From Epiperipatus broadwayi (Eukaryota > Animalia > Onychophora): a DNA stretch of 64,000 bases. The stretch lies in NCBI GenBank assembly GCA_028023455.1, contig JAQFVV010000002.1, positions 26,784,001 through 26,848,000 of the forward strand, read 5' to 3'. A program made the position numbers and the translations under genes. The notes under the pieces were generated by a model. It worked only from the letters and a program-made list of their open reading frames with translations, ran no database searches and had not been told where the DNA came from. Below are positions 21,308-64,000 of this stretch, piece by piece. Numbering within the stretch: the stretch's first letter is position 1; every line of letters begins with the position of its first letter.

Positions 21308-21690
21308 ATATATAAATAAACACAAAAACTTAAAAGTAAAGTTTAAAAGAGAAGTTATAAATAAATATAATAACAAGCTGAACGTTTTCGAGGATCCATG
21401 CCTTATAATCATAGCTTTCTTAAAAATATATAATAAAATATATACAAAGATATTTAAATTAGCATGTGTTACTAATGCTATAAATAGAAAAGACACTTGC
21501 TTTGATATATCGAAGAAATAGTCCACGTAACACGTGCTAATTTAAATATCTTTGTATATATTTTATTATATATTTTTAAGAAAGCTATGATTATGAGGCA
21601 TGGATCCTCAAAAACGTTCAGCTTATTATTATATTTATTTATAACTTCTCTTTTAAACTTTACTTTTAAGTTTTTGTGTTTACTATATAT
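21308..21690 (+). mobile_element. PLE 3' end with inverted pLTR; arms carry A3-U8 hammerheads
   Basis: Near-perfect arms 21308-21472 and 21527-21690; the spacer encodes NAINRKDTCFDISKK* (GIY-YIG tail, same pattern as at 39.8 kb). Confidence 0.85.
21582..21624 (+). ncRNA. Hammerhead motif with variant core AUGAUUA (mirror copy 21375-21417, minus strand)
   Basis: AAGCU AUGAUUA U GAGG cauggau CCUC (G/A)AA AACGUU C AGCUU. Helices I and II and the palindromic helix III all pair; GAAA is intact in the left arm and G10.1 in the right arm. Confidence 0.8.
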
Positions 21691-22145
21691 CATATAACAA
21701 ATAATCTTATGGTCTTTTATTTTATTTCTCCAATATTTTTTTTCATGATTTGAACCATAAGATCATGTATGATAAGATCATTTTTTTATACATCATTAGG
21801 TGAACATTTTTTTTTTTGGCATAATAATCATGTAAAATATACTCATGATTAACTTTATTCAATAATTGTCTTTTTTTTAAAAAAAAACAAAAATACTTTT
21901 AATCTTTTTTTTTACTGCAGGAAACAGTGCTCAGACTGATTTTTTTAATTTTATTGCAATATATATATATAAATATTATTCTAAAAATACCTTAGATGCC
22001 CATATATATACAAATTCAATTTATCCTAATTAACATTAACTTTAAAATTTGAATGCAGTCTTTATATACATGTAATATAATCATGATTATGGCATCCTGC
22101 ACCAAAAATATATTTGCATAAATTGAATTTGTATTTTATTTTAAA

Positions 22146-25909: not shown

Positions 25910-26012
25910 CTAAATAAATAAAAACAAATATATAAGAAAAGTATTATATAAATAAATTAATAAAGAAAGTAACTAAAATCAACTTTTCTTTATTTTTGCT
26001 GTAATATCCTAT

Positions 26013-26272
26013 AAATACAATTTATCCAAACCACTTCAAACACTTTTTAGCAAAACTCTTTATTTGTACATATATATACCCCCATTTCGACTGACCTGCA
26101 GTCTTCTTCAGAGCAAGTTTATTTTGATCTTTTAAAAAAACGTTTTTTTAAAAGATCAAAACAAAGTTGATCTGAAGAAGACTGTAGGTCAGTCGAAACA
26201 TAGGTGTATGTATATGTACAAATAAAGAGTTTTGCTAAAAAGTATTTGAAGCGGTTTGGATAAATTGTATTT
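26013..26272. mobile_element. Spacerless palindrome of two pLTR-like arms with HHR core and helix II
   Basis: Centre at 26141-26142; CTGAAGA A GACTG taggt CAGTC GAAA at 26172-26198 and its mirror at 26085-26111. Confidence 0.75.
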
Positions 26273-26464
26273 AAAGAAATGAACTGATAGTGTACTCAGT
26301 AAAAAGGTAGCTTTGTCCAAGCCTCCTGAAGCGCCATCTTTAAATCAACACATATGTTACAAAGCAACCTAGTTTAACTATTCACCATAAAAATTTTAAA
26401 ATCCTAGCATGTTTGAATCATAAATTATAATATGCAATGCATGATTTATATCTTAATACATGAT

Positions 26465-39100: not shown

Positions 39101-39536
39101 AGCGCTAATTAAAAGAATTTTCATTAAGTATTTTATCATATAATCAAATATGTTTTCAAATGTATTTTATTTATTTTCAAGACCGCAATGGCGTGAAAAT
39201 GGTTTATATCTGTTATGAATCTCGGAACGCTCCCCGAAATAATGTTAGTCACCATGTTTCAGAACCATAACCCAAAAGCGTTAATAACAATTTTATGTGA
39301 ATTCTTTCTAATAGTCGATTGGCATCTTAATATTGGACCCACCAAAGATGTGTGTTTATTTATAATATATTGTTTAGCTAATAAAGAGCATATGAGAAAT
39401 AATAGCATGAATGACAATATAGTTATCTGTCGTTTGGTAGACTGCTGTCTCATTCACGCACATACTAATGTATGAAATCAATTTATAAATGTATAATTGA
39501 AATAAAATACTAGTTTTCTACTTCACCTTTGAGTAG

Positions 39537-40050
39537 TAAGTAATTTAGATTGCGCTTTACGCAAAAAAGTGAAGCTTGTCTCAATCTTATTAAAAAGTTA
39601 TATGGCTAAGCACTTTCAGAGACCTTGAGTCTCCATAATCATAGCCTACTTTTAACTGAAGTTTAGATGTGGTTTATGTAAAATTTATGCAAATTTTATA
39701 ATGACCATTTTCTGGAGATTGCAAAGCACGATTCTTTCCGGTTTATTGCACAATTGTCATTTGCACAACTATGCACTGAACGGAATGATATGAAACGAAA
39801 AATTAAAGAGGCGTGCTTTATTGCAAATGACAATTGTGCAATAAACCGGAAAGAATTGTGCTTTTCAATCTCCAGAAAATGGTAGTTATAAAATTTGCAT
39901 AAATTTTACATAAACCACAGCTAAACTTCAGTTAAAAGTAGGCTATGATTATGGAGACTCAAGGTCTCTGAAAGTGCTTAGCCATATAACTTTTTAATAA
40001 GATTGAGACAAGCTTCACTTTTTTGTGTAAAGTGCAATCTAAATTACTTA
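39537..40050 (+). mobile_element. PLE 3' end with near-perfect inverted pLTR; arms carry A3-U8 hammerheads
   Basis: Arms 39537-39765 and 39822-40050; spacer plus right arm encode LCTERNDMKRKIKEACFIANDNCAINRKELCFSISRKW* (GIY-YIG C-terminal E.N..KR...EA..I pattern). Confidence 0.88.
39941..39983 (+). ncRNA. Hammerhead motif with variant core AUGAUUA (identical mirror at 39604-39646, minus strand)
   Basis: GGCU AUGAUUA U GGAGAC ucaag GUCUCU GAA AGUGCU U AGCC: helix I 4 bp, helix II 6 bp, self-complementary helix III. Confidence 0.8.
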
Positions 40051-40169
40051 TAAATTTATGTAAACAATTTGTCATTATGTTAAAGTAATATTCATTGCTT
40101 AACTTGTTTGAGTAGTTCGAATTCCTTTCTCCACTTCCACACACACAGCTATGCGTGTATATAGTTTAG

Positions 40170-40410
40170 TTAAATCATAGTTAATAGATGTCTCATTGTC
40201 TTCTCAGCTCTGCCAGTGGACCGGATTTGAAATAAATTCTCATGTGCCATCATTGTTATGTTATCTATTAGGTGTTTGATCTGGGACTTAGAGAGTGGGT
40301 TCGAATCCAGACTGGTCCCTGACCTAAATCTTGGGTTTGACTGGGTTTGAAGTACAGTTTGTGAGTTCCAGCACATGTTAGATGGATAAACATGTTTTGA
40401 CCGGTACAAT
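40170..40410 (+). mobile_element. Possible tRNA-derived SINE remnant
   Basis: B box GGTTCGAATCC at 40298-40308 in a GC-richer block; no clear A box or cloverleaf. Confidence 0.35.
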
Positions 40411-42917: not shown

Positions 42918-44834
42918 ATGCATGCCATCCCTAAATTCCTACTATTATACCTTGATTACTTCATAATTCTGATACTAATGAAAATGATTAACCATCTTTC
43001 AACGGAAAAAAAAGAAATCCTGAATTTATATCCAGTAGCCCTGGTCCCTTTTTTAAAAAAGAACAAAGATCCTTCAAGCATGAACAGCATTAGATCCATC
43101 TCCATGACCCCCATTCTAATTAAAGTTATTGAGGGGGTCATCAAAGAAAAAATTCAACACAAGATACTAGACAATATTTCACAATACCAATTTGCCAGAA
43201 AGGGATCTTCTGCCCTCACAGCTATGGGGGAGGTAAAGACCCTACTTCATCACATCAGGAAAAATAGAATGTCAAGACCAATAGCAGTGCAGCTTGACAT
43301 CTCTGAAGCGTTCGATTCAATCAACATCGACATCCTCCTCTCAATCCTTAATAACCTGGATATTCCATTTCAAATCATATGCATTATTGAGAACTTGCTT
43401 TACAATCGTCAGGTTCATATTACATTAAACGGTACATACACAAATAGCTTTCTACCCAACATTTCACTGCCACAAGGATCACCTTTGAATGCCTTGTTAT
43501 TCATTTGCTACTTAAGGGAGATAGAAAACTCTCTCCCAGGAGTATACATTCCTCGACTCAGAAAATTCATTAAACTATTCACTTATATGGATGACGTCCT
43601 CGTCATACTCCCAGATCAAAAACATCTGTCAACACTATATTACATAATAGACAAATTCTCAAATGAATCACAGTTAAAATTCAATCCAGATAAATCAGCC
43701 TCATGGAAAATCTTAACGGGAAAGAAAATCAGCTCTAAATTCCTGGCCGTGCCCCAGGACTTCTTTGGTTTTCACATTTACATGTCTCAAACATCTATGT
43801 CCAAGCATATCCAGAATTCTCTCCTGAACTCTACAATTCAACTAGTCCAAACACTCTCTAGGGTATATCTTTCACTACAAGGGAAAGTATCACTTCTCAA
43901 TATGAAAGTTATATCCAAAATTGCTTATTATCTTCCCATAATCACATTAACAAAATCATTTATAAGAAAGATCAATAGACAATGCTCCCAACTCCTCTGG
44001 AGAGGGAAAATAAATTCCATAAGTATGGCGGCGATGCAACTCCATCGTAAAGCGAATGGTATGTCATTGCATTCTATTCTATCCTTATACTATCAGAAAT
44101 CCCATACCCTGATTTATAACTTGGTTTTAAAACATGGCAACTTCATTACTTCAGAAGTAATACACCCAACTGACAAACCACCACCTCATAACAACTCTTG
44201 GCTTGATGTTATTCTTCAGTATCTCAACCAATATCAGATAATCACCAATACCACTTTCAATTCCAAAATCTCTATATGGGATGCACATCTAATTTTGCAC
44301 CCAATCATCAATAATATAAAACCGTTCTTAGGGATCAACAATCACAAAATCACCTCCTTATTTAAATTCCTTAAATTAGAACCCAAATTTCTTACCTTCT
44401 TAATTAAGGTAAATCAAAATGCCATGCATACTAATCACTTTTTACACTTCAAGAGATATCTAAATAATATTGATCCAATATGCCTGCTCTGCAAGACTCA
44501 AGAGGATACTTTTGACCATATTATTAAATCGTGCCCTCAGCTGGTAGGCATTACACTGCTAATATCGCAAAGTTCGAGCATTGACTTTTACAAAATTCTA
44601 TCATTGAAAGACTCCTTACAAAGTAGACAATTTCCTTTCATTAGACTTTCATTGTTTTTAGTTCATACAATCTGGAGTGTCCATTGCAAACTAATCTTCA
44701 CCCTCCCACCTCCAAATCAGGATGTCATATTTATCGATCACCTTAATAAGTTAAAAAGTAAAGACCTTATCCTGTCTTCAAAATTCCTCTATAATGAGAC
44801 AAGGAATCTCTTTCAAATACCAAAAATCACCTAA
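42918..44834 (+). mobile_element. L1/Tx1-clade non-LTR retrotransposon, 5'-truncated, uninterrupted 638-aa RT ORF
   Basis: LDISEAFDSI, LPQGSPLNALLF, YMDD, LNPDKS-like FNPDKS, L1/Tx1 hallmark LSLQGKVSLLN...ISKIAYY...LLW, and zf-RVT CLLC...DTFDHIIKSC...IW..HCKLIF. Confidence 0.9.
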
Positions 44835-47078: not shown

Positions 47079-47889
47079 ACATTTGTAAATACAAGTTTAT
47101 TAAATTAAGTCACGTGATATATGACTTCATTTCCTTACTAATATATATACATGTGTACACACACATATCTGTTAAGAAGTAAAGTAGAACAAATTTAGTA
47201 TGGTCTAATATAAATACTTCAGATTAATTATAGATGAATCCTTTATATGTACTGATTTGCTTTCAACATATATACGATAATTTTATTTTAATTTCATTGT
47301 TTATCTGTAGTAACTTTGCATATATATGCTAATATGCTGGCAAAGTGTATTATTCTATTTTCATCAGTTATCTGTTTGGTTTAGTGTACCTTTGGTGCTA
47401 AGCACCATGATCATAGCTGTATTTTTCGTTCGGTTTGCTGCTTTTATAGTGTGTATTTATTATTCTTAATATGTAAATGGGATAATTTACATATTCCACC
47501 AGTTGGATAATTGAATGCTATTAACTCTTTTGTTTATAATATAGTTATTTGCAATATACCAAGTCTCCTTTATTTTTCCTTTTCTGTTATCATGTTCCAA
47601 ACACCCTAATTTGATGTGATAATATGTTGGATTATTTCCTTTATCTATCATTAAATGTTAAATATAAAAAAAGTTTTAGAATTTATTTAAACTTTTCCAA
47701 TACAATCAAGTTAATGATTTTTAAAATTAGTTCTGCTTTAACATTTTTTGATTTTAGCCATTTATTTAAATCTTTTCCCCTCCTTATTCTAATTTTTACT
47801 TTTTCTTTTTTAATATGCTTTTTATTCTTGTTTTTTTTTTTTATCTATATGTCTATATCAAATCTTGTAAACCAATTATCATCCATATT

Positions 47890-55189: not shown

Positions 55190-56389
55190 AGAGAACATTG
55201 GATTTTCACCAACCAAGAGAACAAGCTGGATTTAAAAGTGGTTTTAGTACAGTGGATCATATTTAGGTATTGAGAGAAGTTATAGAAAGGATAAATGAAT
55301 ATGAGTTGTCATTATGTTTTGGATTTGTAAATTATGAAAAGGCATTTGATTCTATAAACATTTCTTCAGTGATTAAAGCATTGGATCATCAAGGTATAGA
55401 TCCAGGATATTGTCATATTTTAAAGAATATTTATAAAAATGCAACAGCAACAATTAGATTACATAATGATACTGGGAAAGTCAACATTGAGAAAGGTGTA
55501 AGACAAGGTGACTCCATATCTCCAAAACTTTTTACAGCAGTGCTGCAAGAAGTATTTTGTGGATTAAAATGGGAAACTAAAGGAGTGAAAGTAAATGGAG
55601 ATTATTTAAGTCATTTAGATTTCACAGATGATGTAGTTCTTTTTGCAAATAATGCTTCAGAGCTGCAGGAAATGTTGCAGGAGTTATCAGATGAAAGTAG
55701 AAAAGTAGGACTAAAGATAAATGTTAAAAAAACTAAAGTAATGTTTAATCGATTTGCTCAAAATATGAAAATAAAGATTGATTATGATGAATTAGAAGAA
55801 GTTAACAGTTACAAATATCTTGGTCAGATTATTAATACAGATGGAAACATAATGGAGGCAATTAATCATAGAATTAAACTTGGTTGGAGTGCTTTTGGTA
55901 GAAATAACTTAATACTAAAAGAAAATATGCCTATGTGTTTGAAAAGGAAGGTTTTTAACAAATGTGTTTTACCAGTTCTTACTTATGGATCTGAGACTTG
56001 GACACTCAATAGAAGAGCAATACAGAGACTTCAGACCACTCAAAGAAGTATGGAGAGATGTATGTTGGGAGTAACAAGAAGAGATCGAAAACGCAATGTA
56101 TGGGTAAGAGCACAAACAGGTGTTACTGACCTCATTGAAAAAATTAAAAGATTAAAGTGGAGTTGGGGTGGACATATTGCTAGAAGAGATGATAATAGAT
56201 GGACAATTGAAATTTTAAACTGGATTCCAAGAGATTGTAAAAGACCACATGTGAGATGGATGGATGAAATAAGAAAGTGTGCAGGGGTAATGTGGAGTAG
56301 AGAAGCTAAAGATCAGAGAAGATAGATTAAACTTGGAGAGACCTTCATCCTGCAGCGGATCGATAATGGTTGATAATGATGATGATGAT
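55190..56389 (+). mobile_element. RTE-clade LINE, 5'-truncated RT (ORF 55270-56325) with (GAT)n tail
   Basis: QPREQAGFKSGFSTVDHI*, NYEKAFDS, VRQGDSISPKLF, FTDD, YKYLG, PVLTYGSETW, WGGHIARR; premature stop and small deletion. Confidence 0.93.
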
Positions 56390-62875: not shown

Positions 62876-63050
62876 ATATATATATATGTATTGTTCTGAG
62901 ATTACTGGATAGTGCCTAAATGAATCAATCTGCTTATATAAATAATTCCCTTTATAGTTTCCACGCTAATATATATGTATTGTTCTGAGATTACTGAATG
63001 ATTCCTAGATGAATCAATCTGCATATATAAACAATTCCCTTTATGTAAAT
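62876..63050 (+). repeat. Tandem duplication, period about 90 bp
   Basis: TATGTATTGTTCTGAGATTACTG...ATGAATCAATCTGC.TATATAAA.AATTCCCTTTAT occurs twice. Confidence 0.85.
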
Positions 63051-63649
63051 ATAATGAGCCATTCATTTCCATGCTAAATTTTTTATCGTTTAAAAAATAT
63101 ATATATAACAATAAAAATTTAAGTTTTTTAATTAAATCTAATTAACATTGAAATTGATGATGATGATCAAACCATGTGTGACTTATATAATTTTTATTCT
63201 CTAAGATCCCTTGGAGGATTGTAATCATCTCTCATTTATAAATATTTTTGGGGCATGAACTATGTCATTTCTTAATTTTTTAGAATGCCGCTTTCATTTA
63301 AAAAGAACATCTATGAATACATTATACCTTCAAATAATACTATTCTAATTTGATGCCATTAACAACATTCTAGCACTTCTCCCGTTCAGAACATGATTTC
63401 TCATGATTAAGAGTGATCTGTTCAGGTACACATTTGGAATGATATCAATGAAAGAAGAATGGCATGGTTTCTAATATTCTGCATTAGATTAGCAAAATCA
63501 ATAAATAATAATTTTAAAAATTTAACTCTGAATTTCTGATATTTGTTTTCTAATAATGAACTACTTATTAAAAAATAAGTTCATATATATTACTTTTTAT
63601 AAATCACATATTCACTCTAATGTAAATTTTTTTATATTATTCCTTTAAT

Positions 63650-64000
63650 TTTCTAACACTTTCGACTGTCCTCATCAGAGCTACATTTAAACATATAATC
63701 ATATAACCATTATTCTATATATATATATAAAAATACCTATTTTACATTATAATTCATAATCATATTTTATTTTTAATCCTATACCTTTACTTCCCTTTTT
63801 TTCCTAATTATTATTTCCTCATTATTTCTTTACTATTTCTATTTTCTTTTTTAGCTTTTCTTCCTATCTATCATTCTACATTACTCTCTAATATATTTTT
63901 ATCACCTATTTATTTTACTTTTAAAATATGTATTTTTACATGTATATAGGATAATGGTTATATGATTATATGTTAAATGTTGTAGCTCTGATGAAGACTG
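63650..64000. mobile_element. Head-to-head inverted pLTR-like pair with CTGATGA hammerhead cores (runs off window end)
   Basis: Left arm, minus strand: GTAGCT CTGATGA GGACAGTC GAAA GTGTT. Right arm: GTAGCT CTGATGA AGACTG at the window end. Flanks are complementary. Confidence 0.7.

Follow-up and report, generated by a model that had tools for sequence, protein, structure and literature searches.

What is the status of a hammerhead motif whose core reads AUGAUUA instead of CUGAUGA, i.e., A3-U8 for C3-G8, and which lies twice, in opposite orientations, within the remnants of a Penelope-like element (PLE): the leftover of a ribozyme, or a variant of it that has been maintained? The question is raised by positions 39537-40050 of the window (the whole 64-kb stretch of DNA that was analysed, in whose numbering all positions are given), where a first-pass annotation had described an inverted repeat with the motif identical in both arms. 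Both its coordinates and its letters were confirmed, and the cut site that it had placed at 39979/39980 equals the position predicted here from the parse of the motif. Taking all the evidence together, we consider it probable that the locus (E39 hereafter) is the fossil of a single PLE insertion, whose motif belongs to the class of minimal hammerheads (min-HHRs), carries A3-U8 as a trait of its lineage and likely works in active source elements.

Anatomy of the insertion and state of the locus

The features of E39 and of the two elements with which it is compared, namely E21 (the 21.5-kb element) and E47 (at 47.4 kb), are collected in Table 1. The arms of E39, of 229 nt each, are 97% complementary and flank a 56-nt spacer. 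They correspond to two copies placed head to head, both 5'-truncated, each of them retaining the last ~39 codons of an ORF, a 55-nt UTR, the 43-nt motif and ~67 nt of 3' end, in such a way that the motif sits 55 nt past the stop codon and ~67 nt before the 3' end. Since the frame entering the right arm encodes QLCTERNDMKRKIKEACFIANDNCAINRKELCFSISRKW up to a stop, the spacer is sequence by which the right copy extends further 5' than the left one, and other genomic copies of the family carry on upstream of 39768 with ORF-like sequence. At the opposite end, other copies extend past 40043 with ACTTACCACTCAAAG..., which is the reverse complement of 39495-39536. An empty site is provided by another copy of the host repeat, from which a DNA contig joins 39494 straight to 40066. 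The host sequence itself is a decayed LINE, and the whole neighbourhood is a high-copy repeat.

Table 1. Positions of the features at E39 and at the two related elements, E21 and E47
Feature	Positions	Strand	Remarks
Target-site duplication, left, TTATAAATGTAT	39483-39494		11/12 identical to 40048-40059
One-sided 3' "tail" of the inverted left E39 copy	39495-39536	-	~42 nt; outside the inverted repeat; absent from the right copy
Left arm, inverted 5'-truncated PLE 3' end	39537-39765	-	From inverted-repeat search and arm alignment
Left-copy A3-U8 minimal hammerhead motif	39604-39646	-	Predicted cut 39608/39607
Right-copy ORF tail, QLCTERNDMKRKIKEACFIANDNCAINRKELCFSISRKW and stop	39766-39885	+	TAG stop 39883-39885; 39766-39821 is the spacer
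Right arm, 5'-truncated PLE 3' end, no tail	39822-40050	+	Ends at 40047-40050
Right-copy A3-U8 minimal hammerhead motif	39941-39983	+	Predicted cut 39979/39980
Target-site duplication, right, TTATAAATTTAT	40048-40059		12 bp
E21, head-to-head pair, second A3-U8 family	21317-21682		Arms 21317-21472 and 21527-21682
E21 right-arm motif	21583-21623	+	AAA at positions 12-14
E21 left-arm motif	21416-21376	-	A at 10.1
E47, third, decayed A3-type copy	47380-47618	-	Coding 47618-47490; stop 47489-47487

The 5' truncation, the adjoining inverted truncated copy and the tail on one end make up the architecture of PLE insertions, in which an adjacent inverted 5'-truncated copy is frequent and a 30-40-bp tail at one end is optional (PMC8557442; for the tail, also PMC11167929). 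In the mechanism proposed for an Anolis PLE, the two strands of the target are both cut and then extended by the protein of the element, and two internal RT start sites delimit the tail (PMC11167929). E39 was probably formed in the same way, two 5'-truncated cDNAs of a PLE 3' end having been placed head to head in the decayed LINE, one of them primed at the distal start site (and thus carrying the ~42-nt tail) and the other at the proximal site (with no tail), the double insertion being flanked by the 12-bp target duplication. The same head-to-head architecture is found at 21.3-21.7 kb and 26.0-26.3 kb, and apparently also at 63.65-64.0 kb. No full-length PLE was detected within the 64-kb window, where both long RT ORFs are LINE-type. 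LINE-type RT ORFs are found at 42918-44834 (+), with RVT_1 and zf-RVT, and at 55270-56325 (+), with RVT_1; a word-indexed protein search with the 638-aa RT of the former retrieved no protein at E <= 1e-20, an unusual outcome for a LINE RT.

The two arms of E39 differ at 7 of 229 positions, the differences including CpG-to-TpG changes, and are dead copies that decay freely. None of the differences falls inside the motif, an identity that is not in itself significant, since only ~1.3 differences would be expected in 43 nt (P(0) ~0.27). A hairpin of 229 bp (-375 kcal/mol, z = -38) is the predicted fold of a transcript running through the locus. Because this hairpin would form instead, hammerhead action is not expected from read-through RNA, and the locus is expected to be inert, with no function of its own; if it is transcribed, it would give long double-stranded RNA against its own family. 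The only Rfam matches, to plant miRNA precursors at 39716-39871 (MIR6274, E = 1.9e-11, below the gathering score), were discarded, since they stem from the near-perfect hairpin that the middle of the inverted repeat forms.

The family as a whole is very abundant in organism A, where its summed contig depth reaches 5e4-4e5 in a DNA run, and it is present in a second species, since contigs of it also appear in runs of organism B. The read data displayed no accumulation of RNA ends at 39979/39980, but they consist of assembled contigs, which cannot show such ends; one contig from a run labelled "RNA?" bridges the cut site of the left copy, with DNA carry-over as a possible origin. Two apparent signals were rejected as evidence: a 40- to 200-fold drop of RNA-run depth at 40006-40072, most likely caused by tail-bearing contigs mapping to the left copy, and a DNA contig joining 39538 to 39980, which is a single joint among more than 50 scattered in a high-copy family. 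Next to the insertion, the region's highest-copy stretch (40207-40407, summed contig depth >1e6 in the DNA run) holds GGTTCGAATCC, which resembles a tRNA T-arm; ARAGORN called no tRNA on 40207-40407, and the stretch is probably the body of a tRNA-derived SINE.

The motif and its relatives in the window

In RNA letters, the E39 motif reads GGCU AUGAUUA U GGAGAC(U) caa (G)GUCUCU GAA AGUGCU U AGCC and can be parsed as a type-I hammerhead, with the junction order of this type (helix I 5' strand, core, helix II, GAA, helix III, N17 and helix I 3' strand). Helix I (GGCU/AGCC) has 4 bp, the core is followed by an unpaired U, and helix II (GGAGACU/GGUCUCU) comprises 6-7 bp closed by the 3-nt loop CAA, with a G-U wobble at 10.1-11.1; then come GAA, the helix III strand AGUGCU and U17. 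Every position of the hammerhead core is present except C3 and G8, where A and U are found; the two replacements covary and are isosteric with the known 3-8 pair. Being self-complementary, the helix III strand would pair with that of a second copy as A-U, G-C, U-G, G-U, C-G and U-A, i.e., with two G-U pairs. RNAcofold and single-strand folding of the motif recovered helices I and II; for the dimer, only a trivial extended duplex was predicted, so RNAcofold is unable to model a double hammerhead.

E21 presents the same organisation with other letters: helix I AGCU/AGCU, AUGAUUA plus U, helix II GAGG/CCUC, helix III AACGUU and C17, the block AUGAUUAUG that it shares with E39 being located at 21587. 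Each of its arms bears one disabling change (G12 to A in the right one, G10.1 to A in the left one), while the other arm is intact at that position, and 2 of the 4 differences between the arms fall inside the motif. In E47, the ORF tail is followed by AGCU AUGAUCA U GGUGC uua GCACC AAA, which keeps A3 with a C at position 8 and whose helix II, GGUGC/GCACC, is a third covarying version. The unpaired U between A9 and 10.1 is present in all copies, and the 10.1-11.1 pair is G-C in the E21 right arm and in E47, and G-U in E39.

What precedes the motif is also shared. The two tails that the first-pass annotation had compared between E39 and E21, AINRKELCFSISRKW and AINRKDTCFDISKK (each followed by a stop), were confirmed by translation, and the relatedness claimed for them held, with an identity of 0.65 that exceeds all 300 shuffles; the E39 tail is likewise related to the one preceding the E47 motif (41% identity over 37 aa, E = 2e-7). 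Their designation as GIY-YIG found less backing, as the 39-aa tail of E39 gave no GIY-YIG match in Pfam and no match among 1.8 billion representatives, and an Atlas search with it pointed weakly to a GIY-YIG cluster (score 0.81). These searches were unproductive because a 39-aa query is too short. The tail contains a KE-x3-I-x7-N pattern, which we take to fit the end of GIY-YIG domains; together with the homology to the E47 tail, this suggests that it may be the C-terminus of a GIY-YIG endonuclease.

Several other loci in the window deserve mention. Decayed A3-type motifs are found at 47380-47418 (-), with AUGAUCA, and at 22079-22119 (+), with AUGAUUA, both of which read GCACC AAA. G12 has become A directly after C11.1 in three dead copies (the E21 right arm at 21.6 kb, 47380-47418 and 22079-22119), which gives the CpG at C11.1-G12 the appearance of a mutational hotspot in dead hammerheads of this methylated-looking genome. 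This would fit the CpG-to-TpG differences between the E39 arms, given that G12 follows C11.1 in a CpG; the E39 family, with U at 11.1, has no CpG at 11.1-12. An apparent head-to-head PLE pair with the canonical CUGAUGA core is located at 63650-63690 (-) and 63980-64000 (+, cut by the window end); its inverted arms were detected over only 45 and 27 nt, and its left copy has lost the helix II loop. The 63.65-kb and 39.9-kb motifs have in common GUAG(G)CU, immediately ahead of the core, and GAAAGUG(C/U)U, past helix II, a hint that the canonical and A3-U8 families are relatives. MAFFT run over both could not align their motifs. Another head-to-head PLE-type pair (26009-26276) has a CUGAAGA core, a GACUG/CAGUC helix II and an unpaired A, and its arms diverge right after GAAA (ACAU vs AUGG). 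Outside the window, metagenome contigs scanned with the exact E39 pattern gave no match, and with a general A3-U8 pattern they gave four loci, 0/4 with a helix II, which were set aside as chance matches.

Could A3 have been selected as part of an AUG start codon (A3-U4-G5, in frame with A9-U-G10.1)? This explanation was rejected, as the E39 frame stops at U11.1-G12-A13. In E21, the AUG frame from A3-U4-G5, including the A9-U-G10.1 AUG, runs on for 32 codons without a stop, up to where the arm ends (21587-21682, +).

Catalysis, inheritance or chance

If the motif works anywhere, it is in source elements, where it would most likely act like other PLE hammerheads. As the helix III strand is self-complementary, two tandem copies may form a double hammerhead, following the proposal in PMC4209133; in such a mechanism, which we infer for the E39 family, the two copies would come together within a tandem or multimeric transcript, perhaps aided by the protein of the element, and the cut 3' of N17 would trim the RNA. 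Is an A3-U8 core able to do this? Positions 3 and 8 are known to form a Watson-Crick pair (PMC3884650, citing Martick and Scott 2006), U3-A8 variants occur in nature and hammerheads with a covarying 3-8 pair cleave in vitro (PMC3088659), and a C3G/G8C double mutant partly rescues the hammerhead of the Anolis PLE (PMC11167929). On the other side, E39 carries a G-U in place of the highly conserved G10.1-C11.1, and we judge the catalytic competence of the core to be roughly an even call.

Conservation may not mean catalysis, considering that PLE min-HHRs are poor catalysts in vitro (PMC4209133), that cleavage is dispensable for insertion in vitro, which catalytic mutations of the Anolis element leave unaffected, and no RNA-seq reads end at the cut site of that element (PMC11167929), and that whole PLE clades thrive without canonical hammerheads, as the proliferating Naiad PLEs do, and hammerheads may merely parasitise PLEs (PMC8557442). 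The motif might thus no longer cut, having been kept for recognition by the RT or the endonuclease, for RNA folding, or by riding along with successful elements, to which the departure of E39 from the consensus at 10.1-11.1 and the lack of RNA ends seen at its predicted cut site would also be congenial. We regard this as unlikely, although it is the strongest of the alternatives. All catalytic positions but 3 and 8 are kept, namely U4, G5, A6, A9, G12 (in the intact arm), A13, A14, A15.1-U16.1 and H17, and catalysis requires just these two altered ones to covary, a pattern that protein binding alone would not predict, with the 3-8 covariants being active in vitro as noted above.

The first-pass annotation had itself named the case that would undo its claim: E39 and E21 might be one recent family, in which the shared AUGAUUAUG is merely an inherited, possibly decayed core under no selection. 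The two do lie in the same genome, 10 of 14 residues are alike in their ORF tails, and the motif starts at a like distance from the stop codon, 55 and 61 nt. However, the UTR stretches to its left and right are no more identical (0.52 between stop and motif, 0.51 between motif and 3' end) than shuffled ones (0.53), whereas the hammerhead, like the ORF tail, stands at 0.65 identity, above all 300 shuffles; BLAST links the two elements through the shared 18-nt core block alone, with non-significant E values of 1.8-2.6. Compared with the intact arm of E21, E39 shows differences at 0/11 core and bulge positions and at 11/22 stem positions (hypergeometric P = 0.0036), a distribution that neutral decay would not leave. 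Half of the stem positions differ and every pair is nonetheless kept: four are altered on both sides (the outer helix I pair, 10.2-11.2, 10.3-11.3 and 15.2-16.2), two on one side, and none is broken. A single recent family is thus largely ruled out and, in our estimation, very improbable, and the data support two separate, long-diverged, old families. The A3-U8 swap, common to at least two families of the window whose UTRs have diverged to saturation, would accordingly be a lineage trait and not decay at the E39 locus.

Regarding the remaining claims of that annotation, the retention of A3-U8 through substantial divergence is borne out by these comparisons. So is the statement that the helices of E39 and E21 differ and still pair around an unchanged AUGAUUAUG, with the reservation that the lesions of E21 at G12 and G10.1, and the G-U wobble of E39 at 10.1-11.1, had been overlooked. 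Its further step, that this "points to function", is apt as far as selection for the fold in active source elements is concerned and overstated for these dead loci: with the E39 arms decaying and the E21 arms disabled, it can apply to active source elements alone. The contrast between unchanged core and changed stems supports such selection for the hammerhead fold in master or source copies, the covariation being drawn from only two or three families.

That the resemblance to a hammerhead is a chance match in AT-rich repeat DNA is scarcely credible: the hammerhead models of Rfam do fail to match, the 9-mer ATGATTATG alone is not enriched in the window (5 observed vs 2.5 expected) and a chance-looking match exists nearby, at 39184-39142 in the LINE remnant, but a minimal-hammerhead descriptor run on 200 dinucleotide-preserving shuffles of the 64-kb window gave only 0.045 expected matches per window for any 3-8 pair and 0.02 for A3-U8, the motif recurs in three families behind homologous ORF tails at equal distance, and it shares four non-trivial hallmarks with the published PLE min-HHRs (PMC4209133). 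The nearby match, a U3-A8-like one at 39142-39184 (-), reads GGUC UUGAAAA U AAAU...AUUU GAA AACAUAUU U GAUU; its stems consist entirely of A-U and G-U pairs and its surroundings are the remnant of a decayed LINE RT, which makes chance the probable origin even though only 0.045 such matches are expected per window. As for Rfam, a search of the whole window at the gathering score found no hammerhead, and neither did one of 39300-40300 at E <= 10; this says little, because the stretch 63000-64000, which holds the canonical-core PLE motif, gave no match at E <= 10 either, the models being without coverage of the minimal form.

Meaning and known counterparts

Going beyond this locus, it is conceivable, at somewhat less than even likelihood, that A3-U8 is a catalytically competent, naturally selected core and the mark of an entire PLE lineage, old and very successful, in this animal and in a related species. 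What would such a lineage mean? The 3-8 pair is the tertiary contact that reconciled the structure of the hammerhead with its biochemistry. Natural covariation of this pair is recorded only as U3-A8 in the literature covered, so that a high-copy A3-U8 lineage maintained in diverged PLE families would be a second natural test of it, and would bring to three or more, out of four, the Watson-Crick pairs that nature employs at these positions. Censuses based on a pattern would then be seen to miss some PLE hammerheads, published claims that some PLE clades or genomes lack hammerheads may partly reflect the search pattern, and descriptors with paired N3/N8 cores would yield other counts of elements that carry a ribozyme among animal genomes. 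What is understood of the working of PLEs and hammerheads would be left unchanged.

In general terms, the phenomenon is already published, and the A3-U8 pair is a variant of a known ribozyme type: PLE min-HHRs have been described with opposite-strand pairs 100-700 bp apart and helices that covary between families (PMC4209133). The closest counterpart is the min-HHR of Cervera and de la Pena (2014, PMC4209133), with which E39 shares the 3'/pLTR location, a helix I of 4 bp, a helix II of 6-7 bp and one unpaired nucleotide between A9 and 10.1, as well as the lack of a closed helix III, replaced by a self-complementary 15.x-16.x strand that implies action as a dimer. The two opposite-strand motifs a few hundred bp apart and the existence, within one genome, of families related by compensatory changes are likewise common to both. 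Unlike the published form, E39 has AUGAUUA and not CUGANGA, which is why published descriptors and Rfam models miss it, and G10.1-U11.1 instead of the conserved G-C.

As regards the 3-8 pair itself, the known counterparts are the U3-A8 covariants (Perreault et al. 2011, PMC3088659; Cercyon PLEs of Schistosoma mansoni, PMC4209133), in which C3-G8 is also replaced by a Watson-Crick pair. The U3-A8 variant, with about 1,300 matches in Schistosoma, resembles E39 in being carried by PLEs and in its high copy number (PMC4209133; covariation at 3-8 also in PMC3088659), and differs from it in the opposite orientation of the pair, E39 having A at 3 and U at 8. No natural A3-U8 hammerhead was found named in the literature searched, which was mostly without subscription journals.

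Lastly, the Poseidon element of Anolis carolinensis (PAc, PMC11167929) offers a third comparison. The 3-8 swap of PAc (C3G/G8C) is partly active, but it is an engineered G-C pair on a canonical core, and the ORF of PAc starts in stem II, whereas the E39 frame from A9-U-G10.1 meets UGA (U11.1-G12-A13). In PAc, as at E39, the hammerhead adjoins the ORF/pLTR junction, and the cleavage of two strands and the two RT start sites of PAc match the head-to-head pair of E39 with its tail on one side (PMC11167929).
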